IMG/VR virus record: IMGVR_UViG_3300029286_000009
Coordinates: 62,001 to 126,000 of that record
DNA: 64,000 nt
Reading direction: 5' to 3' (one strand)
The stretch's first letter is position 1. Every line of letters starts with the position of its first letter. Below the pieces are notes generated by a model that saw nothing but the letters and a program-made list of their open reading frames with translations, made no database searches and was not told the origin of the DNA. Position numbers and translations under genes: made by a program. Shown piece by piece: positions 26,339 through 45,833 of the stretch.

Positions 26339-26776
26339 TTACCCGTCGTAAACACTCCAACAGTGAAGGTTGGGTTTTGGTTTCTTTTTTCCTACCTTTT
26401 CTGCCATCAAAACCATGGCTGAATAGTGGTCAGGAGTAATGTCTGTAAGCACTACGTGGTTATCTATTATGTCGCAAGCTAGACTACCAGCAAAATCTAG
26501 ATATTCATCCCCTTCCCCAAGAACTAAGTTAATACCGGCAGGAAGCAAATCATTTATTAAATATTCCCAGTCATCCATTTCTCTTATGGCGTCGCACACG
26601 TCGGCAGGACGTTCCTCTTCCCAGTACGCATCCAACTCCGTATCAATTGCTTCTTTATTCTGATCATACAAAAGGTTAATTAGTTTATCTAGCCCGCCCC
26701 CAGGTAACATAATACCATATACTATATTGCATGTGGAGCTAGAGTTAGTTACGAAAATATTGCGTGTAAATGTCAT
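26339..26776 (-). CDS. TNSSS-motif family protein 1
   Basis: MTFTRNIFVTNSSSTCNIVYG. Confidence 0.8.
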   Translation of the reverse strand: MTFTRNIFVTNSSSTCNIVYGIMLPGGGLDKLINLLYDQNKEAIDTELDAYWEEERPADVCDAIREMDDWEYLINDLLPAGINLVLGEGDEYLDFAGSLACDIIDNHVVLTDITPDHYSAMVLMAEKVGKKKPKPNLHCWSVYDG

Positions 26777-27087
26777 CCGTTATACCAGCTCTCCTCTATG
26801 TAGTAAATTACCTGCCCTAAATTATGTTCATCTATCCATGCCTGCAAATCTTGAAATTTCTTTTGCAGACAATCTGCGGGCGGAAAAGCAAAGAGTCCAT
26901 CCTTTTGCAGGTGTATTGGTGGGAATCCGATATGTACATAGACAGTGTCCCATCTTCCCCACGTTGCGTACAACCCCTTAGGGAGCGTGTCTTCCAGTTC
27001 ATTAAATCTATTCTCATCGATTTCAATACCGTAAGCAATTACTGATGTACTGCTTGAGTTTGTTATAAATTTAATGCGTTTATACAT
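26773..27087 (-). CDS. TNSSS-motif family protein 2
   Basis: MYKRIKFITNSSSTSVIAYG. Confidence 0.8.
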   Translation of the reverse strand: MYKRIKFITNSSSTSVIAYGIEIDENRFNELEDTLPKGLYATWGRWDTVYVHIGFPPIHLQKDGLFAFPPADCLQKKFQDLQAWIDEHNLGQVIYYIEESWYNG

Positions 27088-27092
27088 TATTG

Positions 27093-27437
27093 TCAGCCCG
27101 TAGAACAGCTAAAGATCCAGGTGGGCTTTGCTTTTGGTTTGAGATTATACTCTAATAAAACATTTAGGAGAGCAACTTCGTATTTAGCTTTCTCGTAGAC
27201 ATCATCCTCGATAAAAAAGCAGAAGTCTTCATCTGAAAAGTGTTCAATCTTATATATAAGTGCCTTCCCTTTTTTCCCATTTTCGAATGAAACACCATGA
27301 TCCCAAGACCGAGTGTTGAATAGGTTTTCTTGTTGTTCATCACTTAAATGAACTAAATCTTCACTAGTAATTCTGTAGCCCCACCCAATAAATGAGCTAG
27401 AGCTAGAGTTGGTTATGAATTTGTTTCGTCTGTACGT
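27093..27437 (-). CDS. TNSSS-motif family protein 3 (no canonical start; probable ACG start)
   Basis: Manual translation (ACG)YRRNKFITNSSSSSFIGWGY...KPTWIFSCSTG*; AGGAG 6 nt upstream of the ACG; missed by the ORF track. Confidence 0.75.
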   Translation of the reverse strand, partial: TYRRNKFITNSSSSSFIGWGYRITSEDLVHLSDEQQENLFNTRSWDHGVSFENGKKGKALIYKIEHFSDEDFCFFIEDDVYEKAKYEVALLNVLLEYNLKPKAKPTWIFSCSTG

Positions 27438-27446
27438 AACTTTCTC

Positions 27447-27740
27447 CTATTTCTCCAGAAAATCAATAATATCCTGTAATCCGAAGTGGTGGGGGAATAG
27501 ACTAAGCAATTTGTCAATTCGAACCATTCCCCGTTGGTTACATATAACACAAGCAACTTGTAGGTAATAAGGTTCTCCCTTGTAAAATCTCTGGGGCATA
27601 CACCCACGCATAGGACCCCATGTTGGAACCATAAAGGGGACTGTCCCCTTTCCTTCGCACACCGGACAAGTTATTTTTTGCCAGGTCTTAAATCCTGCTT
27701 GTTCTACAGCTTGAATTTCCCAATCTTCTAGATACTCCAT
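27447..27740 (-). CDS. DnaJ-like zinc-finger small protein
   Basis: CPVCEGKG...CVICNQRG. Confidence 0.6.
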   Translation of the reverse strand: MEYLEDWEIQAVEQAGFKTWQKITCPVCEGKGTVPFMVPTWGPMRGCMPQRFYKGEPYYLQVACVICNQRGMVRIDKLLSLFPHHFGLQDIIDFLEK

Positions 27741-28097
27741 TTAATTCGCCCACTCATCACCCACTACATCAAGTTTGACATACTGGGGACTCACTTTCCA
27801 TTTCCCGTTTACTGGGCTGTTAACAACTATATTTACGGTTTTTCGGTTGATCTTCTCAATTACGCCCGTAAATTTTATCCCTTTATAAGGTGTTTTTGTT
27901 CCGATCCAATACACCTTTTGCCCAGGGAAGAACTTCAATGCTTCCTTAGCTTCGAGAATATCCCACTGTTGTTTTATTAATTCCCATGCTTCTTTACATT
28001 CTGCTACGGTTTTAAGTTTTTGTACACACTCTCTCAATTCTTTTGATAGCAATTTTTCTCCTTTACAGTTACATAATATGCAGCATCTGTTCGTCAC
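27741..28097 (-). CDS. hypothetical protein (SH3/KOW-like C-terminus)
   Basis: PGQKV...GVIEKINRKTV...WKVSP. Confidence 0.5.
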   Translation of the reverse strand: MTNRCCILCNCKGEKLLSKELRECVQKLKTVAECKEAWELIKQQWDILEAKEALKFFPGQKVYWIGTKTPYKGIKFTGVIEKINRKTVNIVVNSPVNGKWKVSPQYVKLDVVGDEWAN

Positions 28098-28100
28098 TCA

Positions 28101-28550
28101 CTACACCCCGTCACTCACTACGTCAATATGGTCGTTGATTCCTAGTTCAGTGAGCAACTTTTTTAGATTGTGAAACCCTTTCTTTAATTCTTCTGGGTCT
28201 TCCAAGACCACAATACCATCAGCTGTTAAGTAAAAACCAGGATAACCTATGCACATATAGAATAAATCGTAAGGTGGGCATTCAAGATAAACTCCCTCAG
28301 GCAAACAGGTCCCCAGTGCACCAAGAATCCCACTAAGCTCCCGCAGGATATAGCTCTCGGGGTCTTTCAAAAAGTTTTCCTTATTTGCTCTCCCGTAGTT
28401 TCTGTTGTATCTATCTAGTAGTTCTTCAGCGGGGCAAGATTTAACCAAATGTTTAAAAATAGACTCTGCTCGATCTCGGTGTAGTGAAACCCCAACAGCA
28501 ATAAACGATGTTGAACTTGAATTTGTTATGAATGTGTGGCAGTAGAACAT
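28101..28550 (-). CDS. TNSSS-motif family protein 4
   Basis: MFYCHTFITNSSSTSFIAVG. Confidence 0.8.
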   Translation of the reverse strand: MFYCHTFITNSSSTSFIAVGVSLHRDRAESIFKHLVKSCPAEELLDRYNRNYGRANKENFLKDPESYILRELSGILGALGTCLPEGVYLECPPYDLFYMCIGYPGFYLTADGIVVLEDPEELKKGFHNLKKLLTELGINDHIDVVSDGV

Positions 28551-29062
28551 TATAATCCATACCCCTCAACCCACCATTTCGCAGAGCCTTTTGGTAGTTC
28601 AAACATATCACAGAATTCATCTATATATTTTTGTACCTCTTCTGGACTCATTTCGTAAGGGTCAAATCCTTCTGGTTCCCAATCACACGATCTACACAGG
28701 ACATAGAAGATCATGTAATAATCATCCGGATCATGCCGATCTAAGTCGCAAGTAGTAATTTTAACAGGTGTTTTAACATATGTCCTTTCTATACCGTTAT
28801 CATTCCATCCAATTCTACTCTCAGGATGTTTCTTTTCGTACTCTTTTTGGTATAGCCACATAATAAACTCTCTAAGGTCATTCAAATCGTTGAGTTGCTC
28901 TTTTGCCCAGCTATGACTGGCTTTGTAGGTATCCTTGTGTTGTTCGTAGAGTAGACGTATTCGGTCGTAAATTCCATCCAACTCTGGTTGGCGGTATAGA
29001 TTACCAAAACATACAAAAGCAGTTGTTGAACTATTAGTGATGTATTTAGAACGAATAAACAT
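28550..29062 (-). CDS. TNSSS-motif family protein 5
   Basis: MFIRSKYITNSSTTAFVCFG. Confidence 0.8.
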   Translation of the reverse strand: MFIRSKYITNSSTTAFVCFGNLYRQPELDGIYDRIRLLYEQHKDTYKASHSWAKEQLNDLNDLREFIMWLYQKEYEKKHPESRIGWNDNGIERTYVKTPVKITTCDLDRHDPDDYYMIFYVLCRSCDWEPEGFDPYEMSPEEVQKYIDEFCDMFELPKGSAKWWVEGYGL

Positions 29063-29289
29063 CAGTCTATCTTTTTAACCTCGAATGCCCAATCCTGATT
29101 CCACGCATCATCTTTAGCAGTTTCCATATCTTTGTTACCGATGAACTCGGCATAGTCGGGGTATGCTGCAACAAAAGCATGCTTCCAGTGTGCTGAACCT
29201 ATTTCAACAATTTTAATTTGAAGGTCGTTGTCAAAAAAGTTAATAAATGCAACAGCAAATTTGTTCATGATTCTCTCCAAGTAAACCAA
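29062..29289 (-). CDS. hypothetical protein
   Basis: Coupled small ORF. Confidence 0.5.
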   Translation of the reverse strand: MVYLERIMNKFAVAFINFFDNDLQIKIVEIGSAHWKHAFVAAYPDYAEFIGNKDMETAKDDAWNQDWAFEVKKID

Positions 29290-29645
29290 CTTGGTTTTTG
29301 TGGTGCAATTCCAAGTTTTTTACACGCTGCTTCTATAATGTCGTCCCACCCAGGCATTACTGTTGGGATTACATATGAATTATACCCGTAGGGGATTATA
29401 AATTGAGAGTGTTTAATATACATAATAGCAGTCTCCTCATCCCCAGAAAGGTATACAGGACACTTATCCCATGACAAGTTGCTTTTATCGTGATAAAAGT
29501 CTTCCCAATACAACGTGTCCCCGAATTCATCTACTAGGGGTTCGCTGTTCTCGTCCAGAGGGGAGACAGAGGGTAATTGTATTCCATAGGCAATAAGAGA
29601 TGTTGAAGAACTATTGGTAATAAATTTTGCACGATGGTAGGTCAT
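29265..29645 (-). CDS. TNSSS-motif family protein 6
   Basis: MTYHRAKFITNSSSTSLIAYG; ATGA overlap with the upstream gene. Confidence 0.8.
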   Translation of the reverse strand: MTYHRAKFITNSSSTSLIAYGIQLPSVSPLDENSEPLVDEFGDTLYWEDFYHDKSNLSWDKCPVYLSGDEETAIMYIKHSQFIIPYGYNSYVIPTVMPGWDDIIEAACKKLGIAPQKPSWFTWRES

Positions 29646-30001
29646 GAAGGCCCCCTTGTAAAGAACCACCCAGGGGATAGTCCGTCTAGGTTAATATTTA
29701 GTTCCTTAGCAAACTTGCGTAGAGCAATTTTTGATTCAGGCGTAACTCTATAAGAAATGCTATCCAGATGTAATGTGTAATTGCCACAGTTTTCAGTGTT
29801 TTCATAGCTGCGATCAACGTATAGAAGAATATTACCAGTATGGTCAGGGGTACCCCTGACGCCACTGTTGCCCTCATATAACAAATCGTAGAGGTCATCA
29901 GTTTTCTCTTTGACGAAAGGGGGCATATTAGGTACAATATAGCCCCACGCTATGAACGAAGTTGAACTTGAGTTCGTTACGTATGCTTTCCTTGTAAACA
30001 C
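29642..30001 (-). CDS. TNSSS-motif family protein 7
   Basis: GTG start with GGAG RBS; (M)FTRKAYVTNSSSTSFIAWG. Confidence 0.8.
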   Translation of the reverse strand: MFTRKAYVTNSSSTSFIAWGYIVPNMPPFVKEKTDDLYDLLYEGNSGVRGTPDHTGNILLYVDRSYENTENCGNYTLHLDSISYRVTPESKIALRKFAKELNINLDGLSPGWFFTRGPS

Positions 30002-30002
30002 T

Positions 30003-30422
30003 CTAACGCTCCACATTAATAGCAATAGACCACTCGGGACACACATAATGCGGTATGTCATTCGCATCACAAAATCTTCTCAGTTGTTTAGCCATACCTA
30101 GTTCTTGTTCTCTTGTATAACCCATCAATTCCCGCAACTTTGACATAGGAAGAGGCATTACTCCGCCCTCCCACAAGCTTAGATATGAGTCTTGGTGGTA
30201 TATGATGGTGCGTTCGGAATCCCACATAGGATGTACAGCTATGGCGGGGTAACTTTTGTGGGCTATTTCTCCCAGCTTTTCTCCAGCTTTGTAGCTTAAC
30301 TCAGTTTCAAACCCGTAGAAAATAAAACTGGTGGAAGAAGAGTTAGTTATGAATGCCCGTCTAATAAAGTATTTATTAGCACTGGAATGAGTAGTGCCCA
30401 GAGTCTTCGTTACCGTATTCAA
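30003..30422 (-). CDS. TNSSS-motif family protein 8 (N-terminally extended)
   Basis: TTG start preceded by AAGGAGG; ...KYFIRRAFITNSSSTSFIFYG. Confidence 0.75.
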   Translation of the reverse strand: MNTVTKTLGTTHSSANKYFIRRAFITNSSSTSFIFYGFETELSYKAGEKLGEIAHKSYPAIAVHPMWDSERTIIYHQDSYLSLWEGGVMPLPMSKLRELMGYTREQELGMAKQLRRFCDANDIPHYVCPEWSIAINVER

Positions 30423-30732
30423 ATTCGTCCTCCTTAAAATGTCCTAGGTATTCTATACAATAGAAAACCGCGTATCCTTTAAGTAATTTATCTGTTATGA
30501 CTGCCATTGCTTTGTTGTCCAGATACCTGTCAAGGGGGTCAGTTTCAACCACTAGTGGCATCTCGCAATGGGGGCAACGAAAACCTTCGCCACCTTTGTA
30601 CTGAGTCATCTCGTCCTCGTCAGGATATCTGCTAGGGTCTCTCTCCCACACAATCATACAGGATGAAGATGAATTTGTGACATACTTAGGTCGGTAGTAT
30701 ATTATGTATTTAAGTTGCATGCAATTCTCCAT
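30376..30732 (-). CDS. TNSSS-motif family protein 9 (with CPHC)
   Basis: YYRPKYVTNSSSSCMIVW. Confidence 0.75.
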   Translation of the reverse strand: MENCMQLKYIIYYRPKYVTNSSSSCMIVWERDPSRYPDEDEMTQYKGGEGFRCPHCEMPLVVETDPLDRYLDNKAMAVITDKLLKGYAVFYCIEYLGHFKEDEFEYGNEDSGHYSFQC

Positions 30733-31133
30733 CCTGGATCGGGGTTGTCAAAACGGTCGGGAGTTATACCATATTTGTGGCAGAATTCTATTATTTGAAG
30801 AGCCCACAGTCTTTTCGTAGAACTACATTTTCTCATATGCGTAAGCGGAAGTGCCTGTATACCACTTGTTGGTAAATAGTATCTTGATGCAGCAGCATAA
30901 ACAGCCCCTTCGATGTAGCCACCCTCCATCAGCATTACACTTATTGGTCCTTTTATATTTTCAGACCAATCAAATACAGCATTGTACACTTGCTGCTCAT
31001 CCATTAGCCCGATTTTTTCAGGTAGAATAATAGCTTGAGACATGGTGGCAAAGGAGTCATCAGAGAAGGTTATTCCAAAGAAGAGAAAGCTAGTTGATGA
31101 CGAATTCGTTATAAACGATCTTCTAACAAACAT
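30702..31133 (-). CDS. TNSSS-motif family protein 10
   Basis: MFVRRSFITNSSSTSFLFFG. Confidence 0.8.
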   Translation of the reverse strand: MFVRRSFITNSSSTSFLFFGITFSDDSFATMSQAIILPEKIGLMDEQQVYNAVFDWSENIKGPISVMLMEGGYIEGAVYAAASRYYLPTSGIQALPLTHMRKCSSTKRLWALQIIEFCHKYGITPDRFDNPDPGWRIACNLNT

Positions 31134-31245
31134 GCTGTTGTTGTCCTTTTTCTAGTCACTTACCTGTATAGAAATGCTTTGAGTGCGTAGTTGCCTATTA
31201 CGCTGGCTTAAAGCACTCATTTTAAACTCCTTTATCGCACCTTAG

Positions 31246-31476
31246 TTAATCGTTCCACGCGATTTCTTCGTCAGCTTTTCTCTTTTCGTATGAGTCAATT
31301 GTTTTACACAATTTGAAAGCAGCTGATTTTAGCTCGGACAGGTCCGCTTCGTTCACATCCACCCATTGATTCTCAAGGTAGGAGGACGCATCCTTTATGG
31401 CACCAGCTACATCTGAGAGCAAAAACGCAGTGGAACTCGAGTTGGTTACATACTTCGTTCGGATATACCGGTTCAT
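31246..31476 (-). CDS. TNSSS-motif family protein 11 (helical body)
   Basis: MNRYIRTKYVTNSSSTAFLL followed by a helical-looking body. Confidence 0.75.
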   Translation of the reverse strand: MNRYIRTKYVTNSSSTAFLLSDVAGAIKDASSYLENQWVDVNEADLSELKSAAFKLCKTIDSYEKRKADEEIAWND

Positions 31477-31484
31477 ACAAATTC

Positions 31485-32002: not shown

Positions 32003-32040
32003 GATATTTCCTTAGCAATTACGTTGAGTGTTTTTGGTAT

Positions 32041-32061: not shown

Positions 32062-32075
32062 TATTGCGTAAAGGT

Positions 32076-32444: not shown

Positions 32445-32462
32445 AGTGATACTCCTTTTGTG

Positions 32463-34505
32463 TTAAAATACGACCTTTACGGTTCGTGTTATATGTCCCC
32501 CCAACTTGCAGACTACTGAGTTTCGTTTGGTCGTGCTAAACCCCAATCCCGATAGCTGGTTTGCGGAAGGTGCGACATGCATTTTACCACCCAGGGCCTC
32601 GAATACCTGTCTGTGCGGCATAAGATCTTCCCGCAAAAACTCGTTGAAGAATCCGTTAGGCGATGTGTCATTAACACAGTCTTTCAGGAGAAAGAAACAG
32701 TGCCGATGCCCGATTCCTGTTTGTGCATCCCAGTAGTTCGGGGAGAACATGCAAACAGAAACTGGTTGGAACTGATTAGTGTTAAGATTCCATATTTCTT
32801 TTGACGAAAGAGAAGAAGGTAAAGATTGGACGAAGTGAATACCCTTTTTCTTGTCAAAAGCTACTTTAGCTACAATAACTCGCTCATCCTGTCGGACTTC
32901 TTTATTATACTCATATGAGTAAACTTGTCCATCGTACTCAATTTCTGCTCTGAATCCGCCTCTTCCCCCGCGGTGTGTGTAGTTGTGAACATAAAAGTCA
33001 TACACACCTTCTTGCATTCTGTCTGAGGAGGTCCATGTGATGTTTTCTACCGCAACTTGGTCCCGGTTAGGGTGGATGATGTCTACGTCTAGCATACCAG
33101 TTGATGAGTGCTTACGCCCTTTGTTATGAAACCAAATGTGGGTCCCATTAGGTTCTTTGCAGTGTGCATCCAAGTCATTCAGATCCTTTCCGTCTTCGTT
33201 CCACTGTAGTGAAAATCTGAGCACCCCTTCGACGTTGCCTCCAGCTGCCTTCACCCGCTCTTTCATGCTGTCAGTGATGTTTCCGTTGTACGCCCATGAG
33301 AAACCGTTATTCCATTTGAAAAGAGTTTTGCTGTTTTTGTTCTGAGGAGCAATCACAGACACTAGATCTGAACTATGGCGGTTTTCCAGAAACACCTCAA
33401 TACCAGTAGTCCTGGGCAGTATCTGCGAAAGAAAGTGTTCAATTGGAACTTCTTCCACTCTATCAAACTGCTTAGGACTAGCGGCTACTTGCTGTTCCAG
33501 CTCTGCAAATATATTACTGCCCATTCGTTTCAGTGCATCTCTGTTAGCGAAAAGGATATTGTTAATCGTAATATCCTCGAGAGTAGCAAATCTCCGTTCC
33601 AACGAATCGAGTAGTCCCAACTCCGCTAGAGTAACTTGTGCCTGTTCAATCATTTTCTTCGTGAAGATCGCCTTAGGGCGTTTATAGTTCGTAGGTGCCA
33701 CGATGGACTCATACTTTCTTACAGCACCAGTTACATCCATTCCTGTTGTGATATCACTCAGAAGAACACCAACAGAATGGTTTCTTATCTTGCCTATAGC
33801 TCCACCAACTTCAACTGACTTACACCAGCAGTAGCAATCTTGTGCATTACTTGGCAAACTATGGTATGTGTTGTGCAAGGACAAGAACTTTGTTAAAGGA
33901 CCTTGCCATTCCTCTCCCCTGTAAAGAGAGTTCTGGGAGATAAGATCAAGAACAGTTTCAATAGCGTCCTTCGATATTTCGTCTAAAGAACGTTTGAACA
34001 CATTCTTTACATCTCGAAACTCCCCCATAAGAGATGCTTCCGATTTAGTTGAGCAAGTGACAAATTGTTTTGGCAGAGTAATCTGGAAATGATCCCACTT
34101 GCAGACACTATTGTTTGTGTGTGAATCATAATTGTGATCTGTCCCGAAGCTGGCAACCTTAGTCGCGAAAACGTCCTTGATAGCACCAGTCTTTACATAT
34201 GCGGACAACGCTTTGACGACTGGTCCATAGGTTGTATCTTCAGTTTCAAAATCCCACACAGTGATGACTTTGCTATTGGAGTCAATAACCGCAACATTTC
34301 CGAACGCACGAATGAACTGCTTGCAACAATTACAGTCGTGTTCCCGTCGCTCTCGAAAAACTTCATTTGTGCCAGGAGGAAAACTGTTGAGGTATATCTC
34401 CCATAATTCATTTTTGTCGATATCTGTTGTGAAGAGTGTTGTATGTTCTTTTAGCAGTGCTGAGACGTGCAACTGCATCAATTTTCTGAATTGCGTGAAT
34501 TCCAT
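32463..34505 (-). CDS. large phage protein with YfaP/DUF2135-like C-terminal domain
   Basis: HDCNCCKQF N-terminus; LRFSLQWN...DLDAHC.EP...LDVD...VENITW. Confidence 0.65.
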   Translation of the reverse strand: MEFTQFRKLMQLHVSALLKEHTTLFTTDIDKNELWEIYLNSFPPGTNEVFRERREHDCNCCKQFIRAFGNVAVIDSNSKVITVWDFETEDTTYGPVVKALSAYVKTGAIKDVFATKVASFGTDHNYDSHTNNSVCKWDHFQITLPKQFVTCSTKSEASLMGEFRDVKNVFKRSLDEISKDAIETVLDLISQNSLYRGEEWQGPLTKFLSLHNTYHSLPSNAQDCYCWCKSVEVGGAIGKIRNHSVGVLLSDITTGMDVTGAVRKYESIVAPTNYKRPKAIFTKKMIEQAQVTLAELGLLDSLERRFATLEDITINNILFANRDALKRMGSNIFAELEQQVAASPKQFDRVEEVPIEHFLSQILPRTTGIEVFLENRHSSDLVSVIAPQNKNSKTLFKWNNGFSWAYNGNITDSMKERVKAAGGNVEGVLRFSLQWNEDGKDLNDLDAHCKEPNGTHIWFHNKGRKHSSTGMLDVDIIHPNRDQVAVENITWTSSDRMQEGVYDFYVHNYTHRGGRGGFRAEIEYDGQVYSYEYNKEVRQDERVIVAKVAFDKKKGIHFVQSLPSSLSSKEIWNLNTNQFQPVSVCMFSPNYWDAQTGIGHRHCFFLLKDCVNDTSPNGFFNEFLREDLMPHRQVFEALGGKMHVAPSANQLSGLGFSTTKRNSVVCKLGGHITRTVKVVF

Positions 34506-34519: not shown

Positions 34520-34789
34520 TTAGCCTTCCAGTTCGTTCACTTCGTAATCGTCTATGTATACTTCCGGCTTAAACACTAGTCCGCATCTCGGGCATCTAGT
34601 TGTATCTGGTTTGTCATTGTCACAGTAGATTCCATAAAGTTCTGGGTCAACTCCGTATGTACGTTTGATATAATTGTAGGGGTGCTCGGGGTGGTTCGAG
34701 TCCAGGCAGTCTCTGTTGTAAAGCATTCCTCCGGATTTCCACCACACAGGTATATCTATTTCTAGGGGTGGCACTTTGGTAATAGTCAT
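34520..34789 (-). CDS. hypothetical protein
   Basis: ORF in operon, CPRCG. Confidence 0.5.
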   Translation of the reverse strand: MTITKVPPLEIDIPVWWKSGGMLYNRDCLDSNHPEHPYNYIKRTYGVDPELYGIYCDNDKPDTTRCPRCGLVFKPEVYIDDYEVNELEG

Positions 34790-35055
34790 GGTGACAAACC
34801 CCCAGTGTTTCTCTTGAAGAGTAGTTTAACATAATCCTCTACACATAGTTGCTTGTGTTTATCGTAACCTTCAACAGCTGCTTGTATCTCTGCCGCTAGT
34901 TCATACAATTGGGGAAGCATATCTTGCCCTTCTCTATCCTCAAAATAGGCAGCACTAAGCAGGAGTTGGTGGGCGTTTTGTAGGTCGGCAATTGCTTCGT
35001 GAATCAAGTGCATACTCGAACTTGAGTTTGTTACGTATCTTGCTCGTGCGAACAT
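34786..35055 (-). CDS. TNSSS-motif family protein 12 (helical body)
   Basis: MFARARYVTNSSSSMHLI. Confidence 0.78.
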   Translation of the reverse strand: MFARARYVTNSSSSMHLIHEAIADLQNAHQLLLSAAYFEDREGQDMLPQLYELAAEIQAAVEGYDKHKQLCVEDYVKLLFKRNTGGLSP

Positions 35056-35057
35056 TG

Positions 35058-35444
35058 CTATCCCTCATATCCTGTGTACCAGCCCAACCATGTGGGCTTC
35101 TGGTTTTCTACCCCTAAGACTCTGCAGGCGTCCTTAATTGTTTTATCCCAGTTTTCCTTAACACCAAGCTTAAGTTCAACACACCCATACTCAATATCTT
35201 GCCTGGATTTACTGACTACCATTACAGCGGCGTCCGACTCAGCCGCAATCCAAAATTCTACTTTAATGTCGCCGTAAGGTATTCCAGACAACTCCTCATA
35301 ATAATCTTCCCAGTATATCCTGTTACCGTTTTCATCACGTAGTTGTTCCTCGGAATCATCTGTAGGATATCCTGAGAGGGTTATCCCATAAGCAATAAAA
35401 GCAGTTGAGGAACTATTTGTTATAAATTTACGTCGTGTATACAT
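35058..35444 (-). CDS. TNSSS-motif family protein 13
   Basis: MYTRRKFITNSSSTAFIAYG; close paralog of 29265-29645. Confidence 0.8.
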   Translation of the reverse strand: MYTRRKFITNSSSTAFIAYGITLSGYPTDDSEEQLRDENGNRIYWEDYYEELSGIPYGDIKVEFWIAAESDAAVMVVSKSRQDIEYGCVELKLGVKENWDKTIKDACRVLGVENQKPTWLGWYTGYEG

Positions 35445-35451: not shown

Positions 35452-35787
35452 TCATCTTTGTTCTAATTCGGGAGCTAATATTTCATATTGGTTGAGGTCT
35501 TCTTGGTAATCAATAAACCAACCAAATTTTTCCAGCATAATGTTTATTTCTTGCTCCGCTTCTTGTACGCTCTCTTTCATTGTATAGAGTGTGTTCACCA
35601 GAGTTTGGAGTTCCCCGAGGATCTGTTCGTTGGGTTCCTCGTCAGACTGTATACATTCTCTGAATTTACACAGGAGACTGGTGGCTGCGATAGGTGCTGC
35701 CCACAAGTATGTTTGCAACTTATGTAGTTCTTCAAGTATAATTTTTGTTGTTTCGTACCCAAAGCACGCTTTCTCAGATGTCATCAT
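35452..35787 (-). CDS. hypothetical coiled-coil protein
   Basis: ORF in operon. Confidence 0.5.
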   Translation of the reverse strand: MMTSEKACFGYETTKIILEELHKLQTYLWAAPIAATSLLCKFRECIQSDEEPNEQILGELQTLVNTLYTMKESVQEAEQEINIMLEKFGWFIDYQEDLNQYEILAPELEQR

Positions 35788-36040
35788 TGTCCTGTATCAT
35801 TCCTTTCTTCTTGAGCCACTCGATGGTTTCTGCTTCAGTGAAACCTACAGTAAATCCGCATTCAGCACAAGCATAATCTAACACTTTGGCTACATCGGTT
35901 TCAAGGATACATCCTTCGCCTAAGCGGTCAAAGTCATCGTAAGTTTCTACACCTATTAGTTCTACTGCTTTACGTTCTAGTCGGTAGACACACAGCATGT
36001 TGTACCCACATCCTGGGCACTCAAAGTTAATTATTCTCAC
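35774..36040 (-). CDS. zinc-ribbon paralog A
   Basis: FECPGCG...YACAECG...EWLKKKGMI. Confidence 0.65.
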   Translation of the reverse strand: MRIINFECPGCGYNMLCVYRLERKAVELIGVETYDDFDRLGEGCILETDVAKVLDYACAECGFTVGFTEAETIEWLKKKGMIQDNDDI

Positions 36041-36115
36041 CTTAAATCTCCTATAGGTTCTAAGATGGTGACGATGATTTCAGGACTGCGTCTCCTGATA
36101 TACTGATCGTCAATC

Positions 36116-36496
36116 TCAATTAAGATTTTCAATTCGTTCTCCAACAACCTCTACTTTATCGGGCCAAAGGATGCCAGTGCACGGAGCATAATCTGGGTTC
36201 TTGTTCTGCTTATCAAGCTCTTCAATAAGTTTGTCTCTTGCCTCCGCTCGGGTGTTAAACGACCTTGAACATGTTACGATATGCCCATATTGGTCGTATA
36301 TCTCGAAACAGAAACCAGAAAAATCGTTTGCCATGATAAGTTTAGTGTTTCGTATCTGTTGTATCTCTGGAACACGTGGGGATTCTTTCCAACTACACTC
36401 ACGACAGCCACGCTGAAGCTTTCTGCCGGATCCCCATTGGTCGTAGATATTGGTAGATTCGCAGCTAGGACATTGGGTTAGTTCTTTTATTCCCAT
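36116..36496 (-). CDS. zinc-ribbon hypothetical protein
   Basis: CPSC...CRECSW. Confidence 0.55.
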   Translation of the reverse strand: MGIKELTQCPSCESTNIYDQWGSGRKLQRGCRECSWKESPRVPEIQQIRNTKLIMANDFSGFCFEIYDQYGHIVTCSRSFNTRAEARDKLIEELDKQNKNPDYAPCTGILWPDKVEVVGERIENLN

Positions 36497-36783
36497 TGTT
36501 ACCTCATAAATCCTCTTTCCTTACTGATCGGGGAAAAACTATTAGTTTTGGACTTAAATAAGCAATTCTTTTGAAGTTTTATTTTTGCTCCTCATCATCC
36601 CATACTATCTTTCTATATCTAATTATCTCATCATCTACAGCATGAATAGGCTCATAGGATACGCGTCGCCTGTTTATTTTCGTGTCATCTATAGCGTAAT
36701 CGAACTCTTCATAAATCTTATTGGGGTTCATATTTTCTACCTTCCAACCTTTTCAAAAGTTTTTTTAGTTTTGGTCAGCGTCT

Positions 36784-37041
36784 TCAACTCTTTTCCAACA
36801 TGTCATTGGTTTTCAACCATTCTATTGCTGTTATTTCAGAGTTACCAATACCATATCCGCATAACTCACATTCGTAGCCCAACACATCAACAACATCTGT
36901 TTCTAGAACGTCTCCTACTACCAACCAGTCGCTGTTGTTGTGTGTGTCTAAGTCTGTGATGTGTATCGTCTCGTAAACTGTTTGGACTGAGCAGAGGACT
37001 TCACCCCTACACCTTGGGCATACAAATTTAATTCTGCTCAT
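36784..37041 (-). CDS. zinc-ribbon paralog B
   Basis: FVCPRC...YECELCG...EWLKTNDML. Confidence 0.65.
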   Translation of the reverse strand: MSRIKFVCPRCRGEVLCSVQTVYETIHITDLDTHNNSDWLVVGDVLETDVVDVLGYECELCGYGIGNSEITAIEWLKTNDMLEKS

Positions 37042-37372
37042 TGTTCACCTTAACTAATTCAAGCTGCTTCTGTTCCCATTCTGGTGTATACCATTGTAAA
37101 GCCATACCTCTTTCCATTAACCATTTATAGAGTTCTGCTTCCCCGTACGCAAACTGGGTACAACAATTTGCACATTTATACAGTGGCATAGCATGCGTGT
37201 TTCTATTTTCTGGACCTCCGCCGTCATATGATACGCCAAAATCTTTTTCATCTAATGTTGATATTCTCTCGACGATTTGTGTTTGGACAATCGTTCTTTC
37301 TTCATGTAAAATGGTCTTGCCGCATTCAGGACATACAAAATAAATATCTCTTGGGTAATTATTTTTGGTCAT
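37028..37372 (-). CDS. zinc-ribbon paralog C
   Basis: FVCPECG...YKCANC...KWLMERGM. Confidence 0.65.
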   Translation of the reverse strand: MTKNNYPRDIYFVCPECGKTILHEERTIVQTQIVERISTLDEKDFGVSYDGGGPENRNTHAMPLYKCANCCTQFAYGEAELYKWLMERGMALQWYTPEWEQKQLELVKVNNEQN

Positions 37373-37631
37373 TCTCTATCATTCCTTGCTCTTCCAGCCA
37401 TTCATAAAGTTCTGTTTTAGTTGTGGCTATTGGTTCTAAACAGCAACCACACATATATTCTTTCAAGCCTTGCAGATCAATTATAGGTTCCTGATTTGGA
37501 CCTACTTCAAAATTTATATCTTCATCAATATCTTTTTCTACTGTGTCTATAGTGTATCGGACTTCGGCGTAAGAAACTTCTTCTAATATGTTCTCGCCAC
37601 AATGTGGACATTTGAATTCAATCAATGACAC
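37359..37631 (-). CDS. zinc-ribbon paralog D
   Basis: FKCPHCG...YMCGCC...EWLEEQGMI. Confidence 0.65.
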   Translation of the reverse strand: MSLIEFKCPHCGENILEEVSYAEVRYTIDTVEKDIDEDINFEVGPNQEPIIDLQGLKEYMCGCCLEPIATTKTELYEWLEEQGMIENDQK

Positions 37632-38178: not shown

Positions 38179-38601
38179 TTACTCATAAGAGATGTAGAAC
38201 CAACCAGGTCCCACTAAGATGCATGCATTTCTTTCATTTAAGGCCGCTTGTAGTTCACGATACCAAGCAGAATAGGTTGCACCATCACGGGGTGCGTTCA
38301 CATGCCATGTCATATCAGTTACAGTTTTTGCTCTCCACTGGTCGTCTTCACGAATTAATTCTTGCGATAAGATGCGGGTGTTTCCGTCGATAGTATAATT
38401 GTAGCACTCTTCGAAGGAATCTGTGTGCCCCACAAAGAATAGCCCACCACCCCTACTCTCCTTGAACAGATTACCTTCAGTAGTGTTACACATAATTTCT
38501 AGTTTATCTAGCCCGTCATACGTAGCTTTGTCTACTAATACTCCCCACGCGACAAACCCCGTTGAGGAGGAGTTAGTTATAAATGCGTATCTCTTGAACA
38601 T
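38179..38601 (-). CDS. TNSSS-motif family protein 14
   Basis: MFKRYAFITNSSSTGFVAWG...GPGWFYI. Confidence 0.8.
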   Translation of the reverse strand: MFKRYAFITNSSSTGFVAWGVLVDKATYDGLDKLEIMCNTTEGNLFKESRGGGLFFVGHTDSFEECYNYTIDGNTRILSQELIREDDQWRAKTVTDMTWHVNAPRDGATYSAWYRELQAALNERNACILVGPGWFYISYE

Positions 38602-40260: not shown

Positions 40261-40852
40261 ATGTCCTCCTATTATGCTGGAATGTCACTGAAAGTAGGGG
40301 CACACTGTTTATAACCAACCCAGCGGTTGTTCAAGAATGTTATTACGTGCCGTTACTATCTTCCGCGGGGGCAGTAGAGGAAGCAGGCAGGCTATTAATC
40401 ATGTCTTTAACGCGTGACCCTACTTTGACAAATCGATCCACGGACCGCACTACAGACACGAGTAATGCCTCATCTAGCTCTCGAAGAGTATTAAACATAT
40501 CTACTTGCTCAAGTCTCCACTCCCATGTAATAGAGGCACGATAATTGTCATTAATATTTTTAATGCTACCGTCAGCCAGAGTGATTGTGCTTGGTCTACA
40601 CTTTGCTATACTAATGTCTCTGATAAGACCCTCATCTATTAGTTGAAGAATGACAGGAGTCATCCCACTCTCCTTTTTATTTACGATAGGCGTTCAATCC
40701 GAGCCATAAGTTGTCTTCGTCCGGAACCAGTTTGTTACCTCCTGAAGAAGCCACAATAATTGTCTTTCCAGTTTTGGAAGGACCAAATGTTTTCTTAGTA
40801 TCAATTTTGATGTGCAAAACTTTGTCGTCGTCCATTGTCATTTCAACATTTT

Positions 40853-41614: not shown

Positions 41615-42077
41615 TTACTCCCTGTTGCTGCACGCTTGGACGCCTTTAGCGGGTTAACTTTGCCTTGTTGCTCAACTTTTTCAGTGAACGCAAAGGGACA
41701 CTTTGATTGGTACCATTTCCTTCCAGGGTAGGCATATGTAGTGCAATAATCACCATCTATGCGGGGGCATGGGATGAGCACCGGCTTCTTTACTCTAGCT
41801 TCTCCGGTCGCTATGAACTCCACTCCTGCAGCCTTGCACTCCTCAACAATGGGTTGTTTGTCCGCGGGAGTTAGGAAATGCCAGGCTTTAGTTATTTTCT
41901 GTGCCATTTTTTTCTCCTACCTTTTCGATAGTTAAGAGGTTTCGGGGTGACATAATCAGTATGGGTAACTCGTTGTCTTTCTCGAGCTCAATACTAAGGG
42001 AATCACCTTTCTTTGTCATGCTGACGAGTCTACCCGCATAATCTGTTTGCCATCCCGACACGTGTACTCTGATTCTC

Positions 42078-42398
42078 TCACCTTTTCGGTACTTTGCCAT
42101 CTGTACATCCTGTTATGATTGTGTATGAATGCTCGTCTGTACGTGCTCGGAGTGGGTATCTTGTCGTAGTCTCAACTACTTTGACAGGGTAATCGAATTT
42201 GAAGTCGCCAACTTTATTGGTAACGATTTCCTCGGTAGTAGAAATTGGGGTGATCCAGAATGTTACCCATATGAATATGGTTATAAATATGACTATCCCA
42301 GTTATAGTCACGAACTGCCAAAGGGGGTGTTCCTCCACAAATGCCCATATAAGGGGGGCTATTAACCAAATAGCAAGCATGAGACTGATTATATCCAT
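42078..42398 (-). CDS. membrane protein (paralog of 43164-43496)
   Basis: Two TM segments followed by KFDYPVKV....YP.R. Confidence 0.55.
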   Translation of the reverse strand: MDIISLMLAIWLIAPLIWAFVEEHPLWQFVTITGIVIFITIFIWVTFWITPISTTEEIVTNKVGDFKFDYPVKVVETTTRYPLRARTDEHSYTIITGCTDGKVPKR

Positions 42399-42480
42399 TT
42401 ATCCTCTCTTTATTACTTCTCGATTTTCGTGATCCAAGGGGGTTTAATAGGTAAGGCATCACAGGATGAAAGGAACGTTC

Positions 42481-43101
42481 CTATTTCGTCTCGCGGTTGT
42501 GGTGGTTGTCTTGGAACCCGACCCGATCAACTGCCTCGCTAATGTGTACACTTGTTATCACGCCATCACGCGTAAGTTCATCGAGCCTGCGCAAATTGGG
42601 TAGGTGTGCATTACATGCACCAACCTTAACCTGCACTCGATCGGGCTCAAAATCACGGTAGTCAAGTCGTGCGCCTTGTTGGAACATATTGACCACACGT
42701 ACCCCCGCCTCCTTGCACTGCACAAATGCTGCAATGTTATTAAGGAGACGCTTGTCACCCCCGCAGACGAAACATCCGGGCGTTATGTCGAGACCAATAC
42801 CACGGGATCTAAAGAACTCACCTCCACAATCTGGTTGTTTATCGGCTCTTCCGCGTTTTGGAATACCATGCCGTGGGTGATCCTGAAGTTCTGGATAAAA
42901 ACTACCGAAGCCAATAGATGACTTAGTGTTACCTTCACCAAGAATGCAGCAAGTCCTACCGCATTCTCCACAATCCCAAGCGGCGGCTCCGTGTCCCGAA
43001 ATGGGCGAGTAGCCAGATCGATACCCGCAATAGGGACAGCCAAACTTTTGAAGGTCGGCAGCTGATATCGCAACGATAGTTTGGGGTTCGTTTGTACCCA
43101 T
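42481..43101 (-). CDS. Cys-rich hypothetical protein
   Basis: CPYCG, CGECG, CFVCG. Confidence 0.55.
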   Translation of the reverse strand: MGTNEPQTIVAISAADLQKFGCPYCGYRSGYSPISGHGAAAWDCGECGRTCCILGEGNTKSSIGFGSFYPELQDHPRHGIPKRGRADKQPDCGGEFFRSRGIGLDITPGCFVCGGDKRLLNNIAAFVQCKEAGVRVVNMFQQGARLDYRDFEPDRVQVKVGACNAHLPNLRRLDELTRDGVITSVHISEAVDRVGFQDNHHNRETK

Positions 43102-43163
43102 TGAATTCTCCTATAGGAGGTGTTTCGAAATAAGGTAACTCTGCCATATTTATACAGAGCAAG

Positions 43164-43496
43164 TCATTTTTCAGATACCCTGTCACCAATTTCTCTAGTG
43201 TCTATCTCATAAAGTTTACTATCATTTTTAACTCGATAGGGGTAACTGATCGTTCTAATTTTTACTGTGACTGGTCGATCGAACTTAATGATAGTATCAA
43301 ACCCAATTTCTAACTGGTTTGTAACAATGGTGTTTGTTACTTCTACTGGGATTGTTTGGAGTATCACGTAGATGGGGATGGATGTGAGGAGTAGCAGAAC
43401 TCCGCCTATGATGACTTCACCAAAATCTTTATCTATCGATCCAAATATGATGAACAGTGTCGCCGCCAAAACAAAAGCAACGATAGCTATCTCCAT
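43164..43496 (-). CDS. membrane protein (paralog of 42078-42398)
   Basis: Two TM segments followed by KFDRPVTV....YPYR. Confidence 0.55.
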   Translation of the reverse strand: MEIAIVAFVLAATLFIIFGSIDKDFGEVIIGGVLLLLTSIPIYVILQTIPVEVTNTIVTNQLEIGFDTIIKFDRPVTVKIRTISYPYRVKNDSKLYEIDTREIGDRVSEK

Positions 43497-43509
43497 TTTA
43501 AACCTCCGC

Positions 43510-44055
43510 TCAGTGGTGTGACGTCTTAGTCACAAACTCCTGTGTGCCTCTACACACATAGGTCTTATTCGTAATCATATCCATAGCGGCCCACTTCCCA
43601 GGATTATCATCACTCGAGGTGCGATGAAAAACATAGTAACCCATTTTGAGTAGGTTCTGATACGTTTGCCAAAGGTCGTAAACATCATCCATTCTGTCCC
43701 ATGCAGCACACGTATCCTGGTAGAATTTTGCCATTTCGCTGTCTCCGCCGTCTATTCTAGCAACAGCATCCGGGATTATCTGCTCGAGGTCTGATATAAT
43801 TTCATCTATGCAGTCAGCGTTGACATAGGCATCACTCCTATGTATGTCCTTCTTTTCCTCCTCATCGGGCATCAGCATTTCTGCCAACTCCGTCAGGGTT
43901 ATAGAGAAATTGGAACCACCATAGGAAGAACCGTCCCAGAAAAAATCTGACATGCCAACTTTCGCCAAGAACGCTTTTGTTATGATAGGACTTCTGGTCA
44001 CTACTACAAAACTGGAACCCGAAGAGTTGGTTATGAATCCAGGTCTACAAAGCAT
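43510..44055 (-). CDS. TNSSS-motif family protein 15, adjacent to the radical SAM gene
   Basis: MLCRPGFITNSSGSSFVVV. Confidence 0.8.
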   Translation of the reverse strand: MLCRPGFITNSSGSSFVVVTRSPIITKAFLAKVGMSDFFWDGSSYGGSNFSITLTELAEMLMPDEEEKKDIHRSDAYVNADCIDEIISDLEQIIPDAVARIDGGDSEMAKFYQDTCAAWDRMDDVYDLWQTYQNLLKMGYYVFHRTSSDDNPGKWAAMDMITNKTYVCRGTQEFVTKTSHH

Positions 44056-44061
44056 TTTTTG

Positions 44062-45126
44062 TTACACAGTCCTTTCTTTTTTCTCACACGGATTGATTGC
44101 TGGTAACACTGCACACCCCCGGCATATCTCTCGGCTAGTACAGTCGGGGCACGCATTTATTACTTTATTGCGGTAATCATCAAATTTGTTTAGCCAAATG
44201 TCACTGAATGTTGTGTCCTCCAATGAGAAGATATCGGTTTTGTTGAAACTGCAGGGAGATACTTTCAGCTCTTCGTCAATGAAGACTGAAAAGCATCCGG
44301 AGTCGCAGGGACCCAAGTTGTCAACAGGCAAATTCTCAATCGGGGTAGATGCTATCAATGATGGAGCAGCACAACTATCAACACCCAGTGCAATTTTACC
44401 TTCGTAAGCACGCAGGGCGGAGACAAAGTTCATCTTTTGTACGAATGTGGGATGCTGCTCCCAATTCCCTCGACCGATAGGCTTGTGCATGAGAAAAATA
44501 CAGCTATAGAGGGGCAACTTTCCTCCTAGCATACCTTTGCCCACTTTCGCCAGCCTGAGTTGTGTAGTCCATGAGTCGATTAAATCATGAGTCAATACTA
44601 CATGTATTGCAGTAGCCACACCGCCTGTCATCAGTTTGAGAATAGCGGGCAGGGGGTTGATACCGGGGTGCATCGATACAGCTACGGCACCACAATACTT
44701 CCTACTTGCCTCAATGATTTCGGGTGTGAGGTCAACACCATTAGTGGTCCATGACGGAACCACCCCCTTGTCCCGTGCGATACGTAGTAGCTCGGGGAAT
44801 TCGGGGTGGTGTTGCGGACTTCCTCCCCCAATAGCTACTTGACAAACCCATGGGGTTAGAGTATCAATGGCGTTACTAAAGTCACTCACAGACATATGTT
44901 GCTTCTTATCCGCTGCACTTTCACGGTAGCAGTAAGCACAATTGAGTGGGCAGTACTTAGTGATATGGATATCTGCCAATTCAGGACCATTAGGGGACCA
45001 CTCGGGGCGCACGTGTTGTTCGTTGCCGTCTGCACCTACCAGAACTGTTTCGTGTCGTTCAAAATACCCTGTTTCCGGGTCAAATTTGGCAATATAATCT
45101 CCATGGTCGTATATCTGTAGGCTCAT
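44062..45126 (-). CDS. radical SAM protein with C-terminal SPASM domain (peptide/protein maturase-like)
   Basis: CPLNCAYC, GGGSP, TTNG, AVAVS; SPASM-like CDSG..SVFID....SPCSF...CPDC....CRGC. Confidence 0.9.
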   Translation of the reverse strand: MSLQIYDHGDYIAKFDPETGYFERHETVLVGADGNEQHVRPEWSPNGPELADIHITKYCPLNCAYCYRESAADKKQHMSVSDFSNAIDTLTPWVCQVAIGGGSPQHHPEFPELLRIARDKGVVPSWTTNGVDLTPEIIEASRKYCGAVAVSMHPGINPLPAILKLMTGGVATAIHVVLTHDLIDSWTTQLRLAKVGKGMLGGKLPLYSCIFLMHKPIGRGNWEQHPTFVQKMNFVSALRAYEGKIALGVDSCAAPSLIASTPIENLPVDNLGPCDSGCFSVFIDEELKVSPCSFNKTDIFSLEDTTFSDIWLNKFDDYRNKVINACPDCTSREICRGCAVLPAINPCEKKERTV

Positions 45127-45833
45127 CGACTTTCCTTTCTTTGATCGGGTTTCTTCTTTGATTTCTTAATCGGTTTAGATTTATCGCCGTAGCCAGAGTA
45201 AACTACTGCTGGAGCCGCTTTCCTGTCTGTAGTAATCACATCTACTACGCCATACGCAAGACACTCTTCTGGAGTAAGCCAAAGGTCTGTGTCTTGTAAA
45301 AGATACTTCCTTATGTCCGCCTCTGTCTTCAAATTAGTATGCTGTGAGTAGTGCCTAATCTGTATCTCATACATAATGTCTTGCCCACGCCGTGTAGCTA
45401 CCAATTGGGGGTAGTTCCCATAGTCGAATCCGCTAAAGTTATGGCTTAGAAATTGTGTACGAGGCGTACATATTCTGTGTCCCTTCTCTCCCGCCATCAT
45501 AACTATGAATCCGCCTGATGCACAAATACCATTTGCAAAAGTGTGCACAGGAATAGTAGACCAATCCATAAAGTCAACAATACCCAATGTGGCGGCGGCA
45601 TCTCCGCCGTAGGAGTTTATAATCATGTTGATTTCGTCAAAAGTTTCCCACTGGGCATTCCACTTCACGATCTTTTCGACAAAGTCGTGATAGTTTTCGT
45701 GGTCGATCTCGTCAATGAGAAGAAATATTCCCTGTTCTTCTAAAGTTGTCAGTTTCTTTTCTTCCGGCATACTGCCTGTTAGCACGTGCCCAACATGTGT
45801 TCCCTTTAAGATTGGTATCATTCTTGGAGCCAT
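45123..45833 (-). CDS. clpP: ClpP-family protease subunit
   Basis: INSYGG, CASGG (Ser), FLSHNF (His), DLWLTPEECLAYGVVD. Confidence 0.85.
   Translation of the reverse strand: MAPRMIPILKGTHVGHVLTGSMPEEKKLTTLEEQGIFLLIDEIDHENYHDFVEKIVKWNAQWETFDEINMIINSYGGDAAATLGIVDFMDWSTIPVHTFANGICASGGFIVMMAGEKGHRICTPRTQFLSHNFSGFDYGNYPQLVATRRGQDIMYEIQIRHYSQHTNLKTEADIRKYLLQDTDLWLTPEECLAYGVVDVITTDRKAAPAVVYSGYGDKSKPIKKSKKKPDQRKESR

Follow-up and report, generated by a model that had tools for sequence, protein, structure and literature searches.

A small-protein tag, Thr-Asn-Ser-Ser-Ser, linked to one clade of radical SAM/SPASM enzymes in phages, bacteria and archaea suggests an undescribed protein-modification system

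We analysed a 64,000-nucleotide stretch of a large phage (positions 62,001 to 126,000 of IMG/VR record IMGVR_UViG_3300029286_000009), referred to here as the window. A six-frame scan for the motif [FY][IV]TNSS[STG] found exactly 15 occurrences, all on the minus strand, in small and otherwise unrelated proteins encoded between 26339 and 44055. A gene for a radical SAM (rSAM) enzyme and a clpP gene lie next to the last of these. The features are as follows, with the position of the motif Thr codon given for each tagged ORF.
26339..26776, minus strand: tagged protein, 145 aa, Thr is residue 10 (Thr codon 26749)
26773..27087, minus strand: tagged protein, 104 aa (27063)
27093..27437, minus strand: tagged ORF with ACG where ATG is expected and a GGAG a few bases upstream, not listed by the ORF search of this analysis; either a non-canonical start or a pseudogene (27413)
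28101..28550, minus strand: tagged protein, 149 aa (28526)
28550..29062, minus strand: tagged protein, 170 aa, TNSST variant (29038)
29265..29645, minus strand: tagged protein, 126 aa from MTYH, Thr is residue 10 (29618)
29642..30001, minus strand: tagged protein, 119 aa from a GTG at the canonical position (29977)
30003..30422, minus strand: tagged protein with TAC at the canonical start position; the only in-frame start is a TTG 25 codons before the Thr, overlapping the 3' end of the previous gene (30347)
30376..30732, minus strand: tagged protein with ATA at the canonical start position; in-frame ATG codons lie 15 and 18 codons before the Thr (30678)
30702..31133, minus strand: tagged protein, 143 aa (31109)
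31246..31476, minus strand: tagged protein, 76 aa from MNRY, Thr is residue 11 (31446)
34786..35055, minus strand: tagged protein, 89 aa (35031)
35058..35444, minus strand: tagged protein, 128 aa, used for structure prediction (35420)
38179..38601, minus strand: tagged protein, 140 aa from the Met eight codons before the Thr (38577)
43510..44055, minus strand: tagged protein, 181 aa, of the subfamily that ends in Ser/Asn-His-His (44031)
44062..45126, minus strand: radical SAM/SPASM enzyme, 354 aa, the proposed maturase
45123..45833, minus strand: ClpP-family protease (Pfam CLP_protease, 2.6e-25)

These 15 ORFs are the same as those listed in the initial annotation, and its observation was confirmed. 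In 200 mononucleotide shuffles of the sequence the full motif was never found, while bare TNSS occurred 2.6 times on average, against 18 observed. All four Thr codons, both Asn codons and both Ser codon families (TCN and AGY) are used, and mean nucleotide identity over the four invariant codons is 0.63, indicating that the constraint is on the peptide. On alignment of the window members, T, N, S and S were invariant, and the Arg five residues upstream was at least 90% conserved. Thr is residue 9 (or 10-11) wherever a canonical start codon is present, and only the four members noted above carry ACG, GTG, TAC or ATA where ATG is expected. The gene junctions were also as described earlier: the rSAM stop codon TAA is followed by 6 nt and then the ATG of the 43510-44055 member, and clpP and the rSAM gene overlap by ATGA.

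The rSAM protein matched Pfam Radical_SAM (PF04055) at 1e-13, with 52.2 bits against a cut-off of 29.5, and C59-x3-C63-x2-C66 of the cluster motif was invariant in 31 homologues. The C-terminal cysteines, C252, C274, C278, C292 and C326-x2-C329-x5-C335-x2-C338...C347, agree with a SPASM domain, although the last spacing is x2 and not x3. The Pfam SPASM model was not reported for the window protein, but passed its cut-off in homologues from two of the sequences collected for comparison, L003 (21.6 against 21.5) and L190 (24.8), and TIGR04085 scored 35.7 against 27 in L190. The clade formed by L002, L003 and L004 lacks the last three Cys. The best solved relative in a profile search was the streptide maturase SuiB (5v1q, 1.7e-13, rSAM core plus SPASM), followed by PqqE and SkfB, all of which are peptide-modifying SPASM enzymes. 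Only about 48 residues precede the cluster motif, and Pfam reported no peptide-recognition domain there.

In order to determine whether the tag and the enzyme are linked outside this phage, we first searched for the enzyme. An alignment of the rSAM family retrieved 249 confirmed viral loci, and of the 79 that were kept, starting from homologues only 28-36% identical, 73 hold 1-8 ORFs starting MK.[RK]..[FY][VI][TS]NSSS, nearly all on the rSAM strand and almost always within 5 kb downstream. Of the six without a tagged ORF, four are cut off less than 0.5 kb beyond the rSAM and two have about 2.5-3 kb of downstream sequence. The rSAMs of L002, L003 and L004 are only 28-31% identical to that of the window (E 1e-32 to 2e-45), yet these loci hold 3-6 tagged paralogues, and a related huge phage (L006, rSAM 60% identical) has 19.

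We then performed the reverse search, using a degenerate DNA pattern for the tag alone, and found 103 viral stretches. The rSAM was present in 37 of 40 stretches with at least 4 kb available upstream and in 18 of 20 with 2-4 kb, that is, in 55 of 60 with at least 2 kb. All 65 rSAM hits are on the same strand as the tags, and in 29 of 65 the first tagged ORF starts within 30 nt of the rSAM end; the genes are often translationally coupled. However, three stretches with at least 4 kb upstream (L095, L165 and L173) lack an rSAM, and in the window itself most tagged genes lie 5-18 kb from the rSAM rather than adjacent to it. Frequent occurrence of tagged proteins without the enzyme, which had been set out beforehand as a result that would count against a link, was thus not seen in these viral loci.

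In cellular genomes, 425 confirmed loci were found across many bacterial and archaeal phyla, and 78 of the 80 that were kept hold a tagged ORF, usually a single one of about 133 aa directly upstream of the rSAM. Here the unit is a cassette of a SMEK-STAND NTPase, a tag-less paralogue, one tagged protein and the rSAM, which places it in a conflict-system context. The NTPase, an 882-aa neighbour in 51 of 80 cellular loci, has a SMEK N-terminal domain (7e-41) and a STAND NTPase module that matches models of Avs2, an Avs/AVAST-type defence gene (PADLOC, 1.4e-20). It nevertheless scored only 54.1 bits against the curated Avs2 cut-off of 1000 (NF041813), none of the library models matched here links Avs to an rSAM or to a tagged small protein, and there is no STAND gene in this region of the window. 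The cellular neighbourhood is the only indication of a role in phage-host conflict, and the proposal in the initial annotation of a panel of phage effectors was not supported as a phage-only system.

Across 156 family representatives the Thr/Ser is exactly residue 9 in 145, and N10, S11 and S12 were invariant in every set examined. In contrast, the proteins beyond the tag differ completely between subfamilies, with zinc ribbons, BRCT and LRR domains and lengths of 82 to 712 aa. Searches of Pfam and NCBIfam with tagged proteins of both kinds, of PHROGs and PADLOC with phage ones, and motif searches of the paper library returned no match. The initial annotation had also noted [YWF]G 6-7 residues after the motif in many members and proposed it as a second candidate target site. 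While 10 of 15 window members have [YWF]G, at positions 19-20, it was found in only 18 of 121 phage representatives and in none of 59 cellular ones. It is a subfamily feature, its role as a target site was not supported, and the family as a whole does not have the conserved X-Tyr-Gly target site of spliceotide substrates.

A further proposal was that ClpP trims a short leader from the tagged proteins. We used phmmer to search the ORFs of all 272 sequences collected, and found ClpP homologues only in the same phage, in L270, which has no tags, and about 7 kb away in L249; the gene recurs only in close relatives of this phage. ClpP as a processing partner was therefore not supported, and the protease is a neighbour in this lineage only, not a conserved part of the system. 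These results also bear on the possibility that the tag is a signal for targeting, packaging or degradation, for example by ClpP and a ClpB-like AAA+ protein encoded at 23381-25486, with the rSAM adjacent only by incidental synteny. The layout does resemble the T4 internal-protein locus, where highly diverse small phage proteins share only a capsid-targeting N-terminal leader of roughly 10 residues, and clpP does overlap the rSAM start. However, the leader sequence differs, the conserved partner here is an rSAM and not a prohead protease, and the tag and rSAM travel together in non-phage cellular cassettes. The two-way linkage across rSAMs under 36% identical cannot be inherited synteny, and we consider this explanation very unlikely.

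The structure of the 35058-35444 protein was predicted with AlphaFold2 (mean pLDDT 87.4, pTM 0.79). Residues 1-14, which include the tag, had no secondary structure, and residues 1-10 had a pLDDT of 54, so that the predicted tag is an unstructured tail ahead of a compact body which begins with a strand at residues 15-24. The motif is thus not buried in a core strand in this model, although the low confidence of the tail may only reflect the absence of a partner in the prediction. The body had no significant match among solved structures in the PDB, and only uncharacterized viral proteins matched in BFVD. The model of the 43510-44055 protein was unusable (pLDDT 51.9).

Taken together, the interpretation offered in the initial annotation was partly supported: its core idea, a tag that ties a diversified panel of proteins to one rSAM/SPASM maturase, was supported, while its proposals for ClpP, [YWF]G and a phage-only system of effectors were not. 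We suggest that the segment M-x-x-[RK]-x-x-[FY]-[VI]-[TS]-N-S-S-S-x-S-[FY] is a recognition and modification tag, and that the enzyme most likely binds this flexible tail and uses a 5'-deoxyadenosyl radical to modify one of the invariant residues Thr9, Asn10, Ser11 or Ser12. In this view it would do so on every tagged protein that the genome encodes, 15 in the window, 19 in the related huge phage, 1-8 in other phages and one in the cellular cassettes, and the variable bodies would be independent folded domains that provide different specificities. The analysis establishes the motif, its fixed position, its constraint at the peptide level, the genomic linkage in both directions and the predicted unstructured tail. 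That any residue is modified, that the tag is a substrate rather than a docking handle, and any biological function are inferred without chemical evidence, and we place the probability of this reading at about 0.6.

The linkage data fit equally well an adaptor model, in which the tag is a docking handle and each variable domain brings a different protein, nucleic acid or small molecule to the rSAM, which then modifies that target. The presence of typical binding modules (BRCT, LRR and zinc ribbons) and the ratio of one enzyme to many tagged proteins are in keeping with this. However, an invariant run of small polar residues in a flexible tail looks more like a reaction site than a docking surface, and the precedents SuiB, PqqE and SkfB act directly on a short motif of the adjacent gene product. 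We therefore regard the adaptor model as unlikely.

No known chemistry maps onto the tag, which has no Cys, no aromatic-x-x spacing tied to a characterized SPASM reaction and no sulfatase motif; candidate reactions are Ser oxidation to formylglycine, a carbon-carbon or ether crosslink, or epimerisation. Anaerobic sulfatase-maturing enzymes (anSME/AtsB) likewise serve many paralogous full-size clients through a short invariant Ser-containing motif near the N-terminus, without a leader-recognition domain. The clients described here are not sulfatases and share no fold among themselves, and there is no Pro/Ala-x-Arg after any Ser of the tag, as the sulfatase motif (C/S)-x-(P/A)-x-R would require. 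Further, no anSME was found among the PDB profile hits at E <= 0.001 or among the 25 best NCBIfam matches. The SPASM-class maturases of RiPPs (SuiB, PqqE, SkfB and MftC) are the closest relatives by sequence profile. Their substrate gene is adjacent, as is the gene of the putative substrate here, which is often translationally coupled, and multi-precursor clusters have several precursors per enzyme. RiPP precursors, however, are short, with an N-terminal leader and a C-terminal core that is modified, whereas in the tagged proteins the conserved, presumably modified element is the first 16-20 residues and the remainder is a folded protein, as predicted for the modelled member, of 80-700 aa. There is no Lys-Trp or Glu-Tyr pair in the motif, and no protease or exporter is conserved alongside.

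A broader reading is possible but tentative, in which the rSAM and the tag form a previously unrecognized, widely transferred maturation module with new radical chemistry on an Asn-Ser-Ser segment. The module would install a common functional group on modular proteins whose variable domains pick different targets. Cells would deploy it next to a STAND NTPase as part of an immune cassette, and large phages would have expanded it into arrays of up to 19 clients as a counter-measure or takeover arsenal.

Finally, the tag could be the first element of an active or ligand-binding site within each protein, for example a Ser-rich phosphate-binding loop completed by the conserved C-terminus, with the rSAM supplying a cofactor or small molecule rather than modifying the tag. 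S15-G20 of the motif is the first core strand in the predicted structure, and several subfamilies have acidic/His motifs. We nevertheless consider this unlikely, since nothing outside the tag is conserved across the whole family, the bodies carry unrelated domains, and residues 1-14 are not packed in a confident model even though they are the best-conserved columns of its alignment. Many subfamilies do have conserved extreme C-termini (-SHH, -CNHMG, -GRNG and -GGY), which would fit a site formed by both termini within each protein. Window members share a C-terminal P-x-W strand, and in the subfamily of the 43510-44055 protein a terminal His was present in at least 90% of 23 members drawn from many phage lineages.

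The window is part of a very large phage genome. Proteins identical to those it encodes occur on contigs of up to 320 kb, and a 259.7 kb IMG/VR contig contains the same locus. The plus-strand half encodes a DNA polymerase, NrdD, an NAD-dependent ligase and a ClpB-like AAA+ protein, while the minus-strand half is dense with small genes and also encodes a helicase and a PARP-like protein. A blastn search of phages using 8 kb of the window found no nucleotide similarity to cultured phages. Apart from the tagged genes, the following features of the window were seen.

23381-26127 (+): a ClpB/ClpX-like AAA+ protein (AAA_2 plus ClpB_D2-small) followed by a 175-aa ORF; in a related 83 kb contig, the corresponding pair (AAA+ plus an HNH_3 protein) sits at the same boundary of the small-gene array.
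27447-27740 (-): a 97-aa protein inside the tagged array with two CxxCxGxG-like repeats, reminiscent of the DnaJ zinc-finger domain, judged from reading the translation only.
32463-34505 (-): a 680-aa protein in the middle of the array that matches phrog_1735 (unknown function) end to end at 1.6e-262 and has no Pfam hit.
35774-37631 (-): a second paralogous family, of four adjacent small zinc-ribbon proteins (CPxC...CxxC, ending in a conserved E-x-x-x-W-L-x-x-x-G-M helix) at 35774-36040, 36784-37041, 37028-37372 and 37359-37631, with a more distant fifth at 36116-36496.
42078-42398 and 43164-43496 (-): two paralogous small proteins with hydrophobic N-terminal halves (31% identical, E 1e-9), just downstream of the pair formed by the radical SAM (rSAM) gene and a tagged gene.
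49200-50057 (-): a phage-encoded protein with PARP catalytic (3e-19) and PARP regulatory (1.6e-9) domains.

The initial annotation had listed fifteen minus-strand ORFs sharing an N-terminal tag, and this observation held. A six-frame scan found [FY][IV]TNSS[STG] fifteen times, all on the minus strand and at the listed ORFs, and the motif occurred in none of 200 shuffles of the sequence. The four invariant codons use all Thr codons, both Asn codons and both families of Ser codons, with a mean nucleotide identity of 0.63, indicating that selection acts on the peptide. T, N, S and S are invariant, an Arg five residues upstream is nearly so, and the Thr is residue 9-11 wherever a normal start codon exists. 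Four members carry ACG, GTG, TAC or ATA at the position where the others have ATG, and some of these may be pseudogenes or may use unusual starts. Of the three with ACG, TAC and ATA (27093-27437, 30003-30422 and 30376-30732, respectively, all on the minus strand), the 30003 member can only start at a TTG that overlaps the end of the previous tagged gene, so a fused or frameshifted product is possible. The gene junctions were also as described, with the rSAM stop codon followed by six bases and the next ATG, and an ATGA overlap of clpP with the rSAM gene.

The tagged proteins of the window share a weak common body plan, consisting of a first strand straight after the tag, a helix and a final P-x-W strand, but across the wider family only the tag is conserved. 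A profile built from 44 members matched 13,636 cluster representatives (clustered at 50% identity) at E <= 0.001 among 1.84 billion, and most of the best 150 are 100-190 aa in length. In 145 of 156 family representatives the Thr/Ser is exactly residue 9, and the logo reads M1 [KF]2 h3 [KR]4 x x F7 [VI]8 [TS]9 N10 S11 S12 S13 x S15 F16. Bodies range from 82 aa to 712 aa and include zinc ribbons, BRCT and LRR domains, and several subfamilies have fixed C-terminal ends such as -SHH. Some database proteins (P0103, P0104, P0133, P0139 and P0185) contain two tags, the second preceded by its own Met-Lys; these may be adjacent genes fused by gene calling, possibly in stop-codon-recoded phages. Another, P0179, has an internal tag without a Met.

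No family hit was obtained for the tagged proteins on searching Pfam with ten window members and five cellular ones, NCBIfam with two window, four other phage and two cellular members, PHROGs with ten window members, or PADLOC with five phage members and one cellular member. A search of PDB sequences with the family profile gave only chance-level hits, and NCBI and UniProt call all listed members hypothetical or uncharacterized. A tblastn search of cultured phage genomes with two members found nothing, probably because the only conserved part is short and of low complexity. We also considered whether the tag could be an N-terminal loop of the PP-loop, MIDAS, SGNH or PIN-like type, but no other catalytic residues are conserved.

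An AlphaFold2 model of the 35058-35444 product was confident (pLDDT 87.4, pTM 0.79). Residues 1-14 were left without secondary structure, with a pLDDT of 54 over residues 1-10, and the fold starts at a strand spanning residues 15-24. The modelled body has no significant match in the PDB (best E 0.05, TM <= 0.32), and in BFVD it matches only uncharacterized viral proteins. In this prediction the tag is therefore a conserved, exposed tail attached to variable domains. The model of the 43510-44055 product had a pLDDT of only 51.9 and was not used.

The main result was the linkage of the tag to the rSAM. The window rSAM has the CX3CX2C motif and a C-terminal Cys-rich domain of SPASM type, and its nearest solved relatives by profile are SuiB, PqqE and SkfB. 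Close homologues sit on the same metagenomic contigs as tagged proteins. The locus L006, from a 381 kb contig of a related phage, has an rSAM 60% identical to that of the window, with 17 tagged ORFs upstream of it and two downstream. In this contig two IS605 OrfB/TnpB-type genes interrupt the tagged array, and a Ser/Thr protein kinase, an adenylosuccinate-synthetase homologue and a Thg1-like gene lie just downstream (L006 6087-7046 and 12205-13308; 14033-15118; 17001-18320). Three other huge-phage loci were retrieved through the tag alone, and each turned out to have, next to the tagged cluster, an rSAM that is 28-31% identical over its full length. In one of these loci, L004 (3162-5345), an RtcB RNA ligase gene is interrupted by an intein carrying an HNH endonuclease, a few kb upstream of that phage's rSAM.

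We then examined the linkage in both directions. Starting from an alignment of the rSAM family, 249 viral loci were confirmed, and of 79 examined, 73 hold 1-8 tagged ORFs, nearly all on the rSAM strand; four of the six without are truncated less than 0.5 kb beyond the rSAM. Starting instead from a degenerate DNA pattern for the tag, 37 of 40 loci with at least 4 kb upstream and 18 of 20 with 2-4 kb contain the rSAM, which is always on the same strand, and 29 of 65 junctions fall within 30 nt. In cellular genomes, 425 loci were confirmed across many bacterial phyla and several archaea, and of the 80 kept, 78 hold a tagged ORF. Vibrio phage D479, an isolate with a 258 kb genome, carries the rSAM (VPHD479_0104) and five tagged genes (VPHD479_0110, 0127, 0128, 0132 and 0134), and in its locus (L271) a homing endonuclease gene (12971-13699) lies directly after, and on the opposite strand to, the rSAM gene. 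A tree of 150 rSAMs showed three tag-associated groups, namely the window plus L006, a cellular cassette clade and a phage/Firmicutes clade, with a tag-less T4-like outgroup on a long branch. The T4-like phage rSAMs (Lw1, Slopekvirus and others; 26-29% identical) were therefore rejected as members of the system, since they form this outgroup and have no tagged ORFs nearby. The uncultured phage LR756500 was likewise rejected, as its rSAM is 23% identical and no tags lie within 12 kb.

Two further proposals of the initial annotation, that ClpP is a processing partner and that a [YWF]G dipeptide is a second target site, were not supported. ClpP homologues are absent from the fetched loci of every other tag-bearing lineage, apart from one about 7 kb away in the locus L249, and they recur only in close relatives of this phage. 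The [YWF]G dipeptide is a feature of one subfamily.

The most economical reading is that one maturase acts on many clients through a short tag. In logic this resembles anSME with its sulfatases, and in enzyme ancestry it resembles the RiPP maturases, but the system is a member of neither, because the sulfatase motif is absent and the clients are folded proteins tagged at the N-terminus. The tag, its constraint at the peptide level and its linkage to the rSAM are shown by the analysis, are statistically overwhelming and extend far wider than the window, whereas modification of the tag by the enzyme is inferred. None of the linkage data distinguishes a substrate from a docking handle. An adaptor model, in which the tag is such a handle, remains possible, as do a shared-site model, in which the tag is part of a site within each protein, and a signal model, but all three at lower probability. 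The interpretation offered in the initial annotation is thus partly supported: comparative genomics supports its central inference that the tag ties many proteins to one rSAM/SPASM maturase, but not the ClpP and YG additions.

If the enzyme does modify the tag, this is a large, cross-domain family of post-translationally matured proteins that no searched database names, with the rSAM clade encoded at no fewer than 249 viral loci and 425 cellular genome loci. The substrate logic, a short N-terminal tag on full-size, unrelated proteins, is unusual for SPASM enzymes. It would give a handle on dozens of hypothetical genes per huge-phage genome and would point to new radical chemistry on Ser or Asn, and it links a phage gene expansion to a STAND-NTPase cassette in bacteria and archaea. 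Literature searches by motif string and by topic found no description of the system; Kaur et al. 2020 (PMC7159879) describe a different pairing, of an rSAM-SPASM enzyme with FxSxx peptides. The system is directly testable, and cultured carriers include Vibrio phage D479, Orbus sasakiae JCM 18050, Roseovarius albus CECT 7450 and Clostridium puniceum DSM 2619.

In 46-51 of the 80 cellular loci, the genes run in the following order.

First, an 882-aa SMEK-domain STAND NTPase with Avs2-like matches, far below curated cut-offs.
Second, a protein of about 120-130 aa that is a tag-less paralogue of the tagged protein's body.
Third, the tagged protein.
Fourth, the rSAM.

Orbus sasakiae and Roseovarius albus carry this four-gene cassette. 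The short branches across distant phyla in the cellular cassette clade indicate horizontal transfer. This suggests a role in a conflict system but does not prove one. Several public annotations of the cellular tagged protein (cluster members P0205, P0206, P0210, P0217 and P0221) are shorter, at 86-110 aa, than the full 132-133 aa, and if the missing residues are N-terminal, the gene call has dropped the tag.
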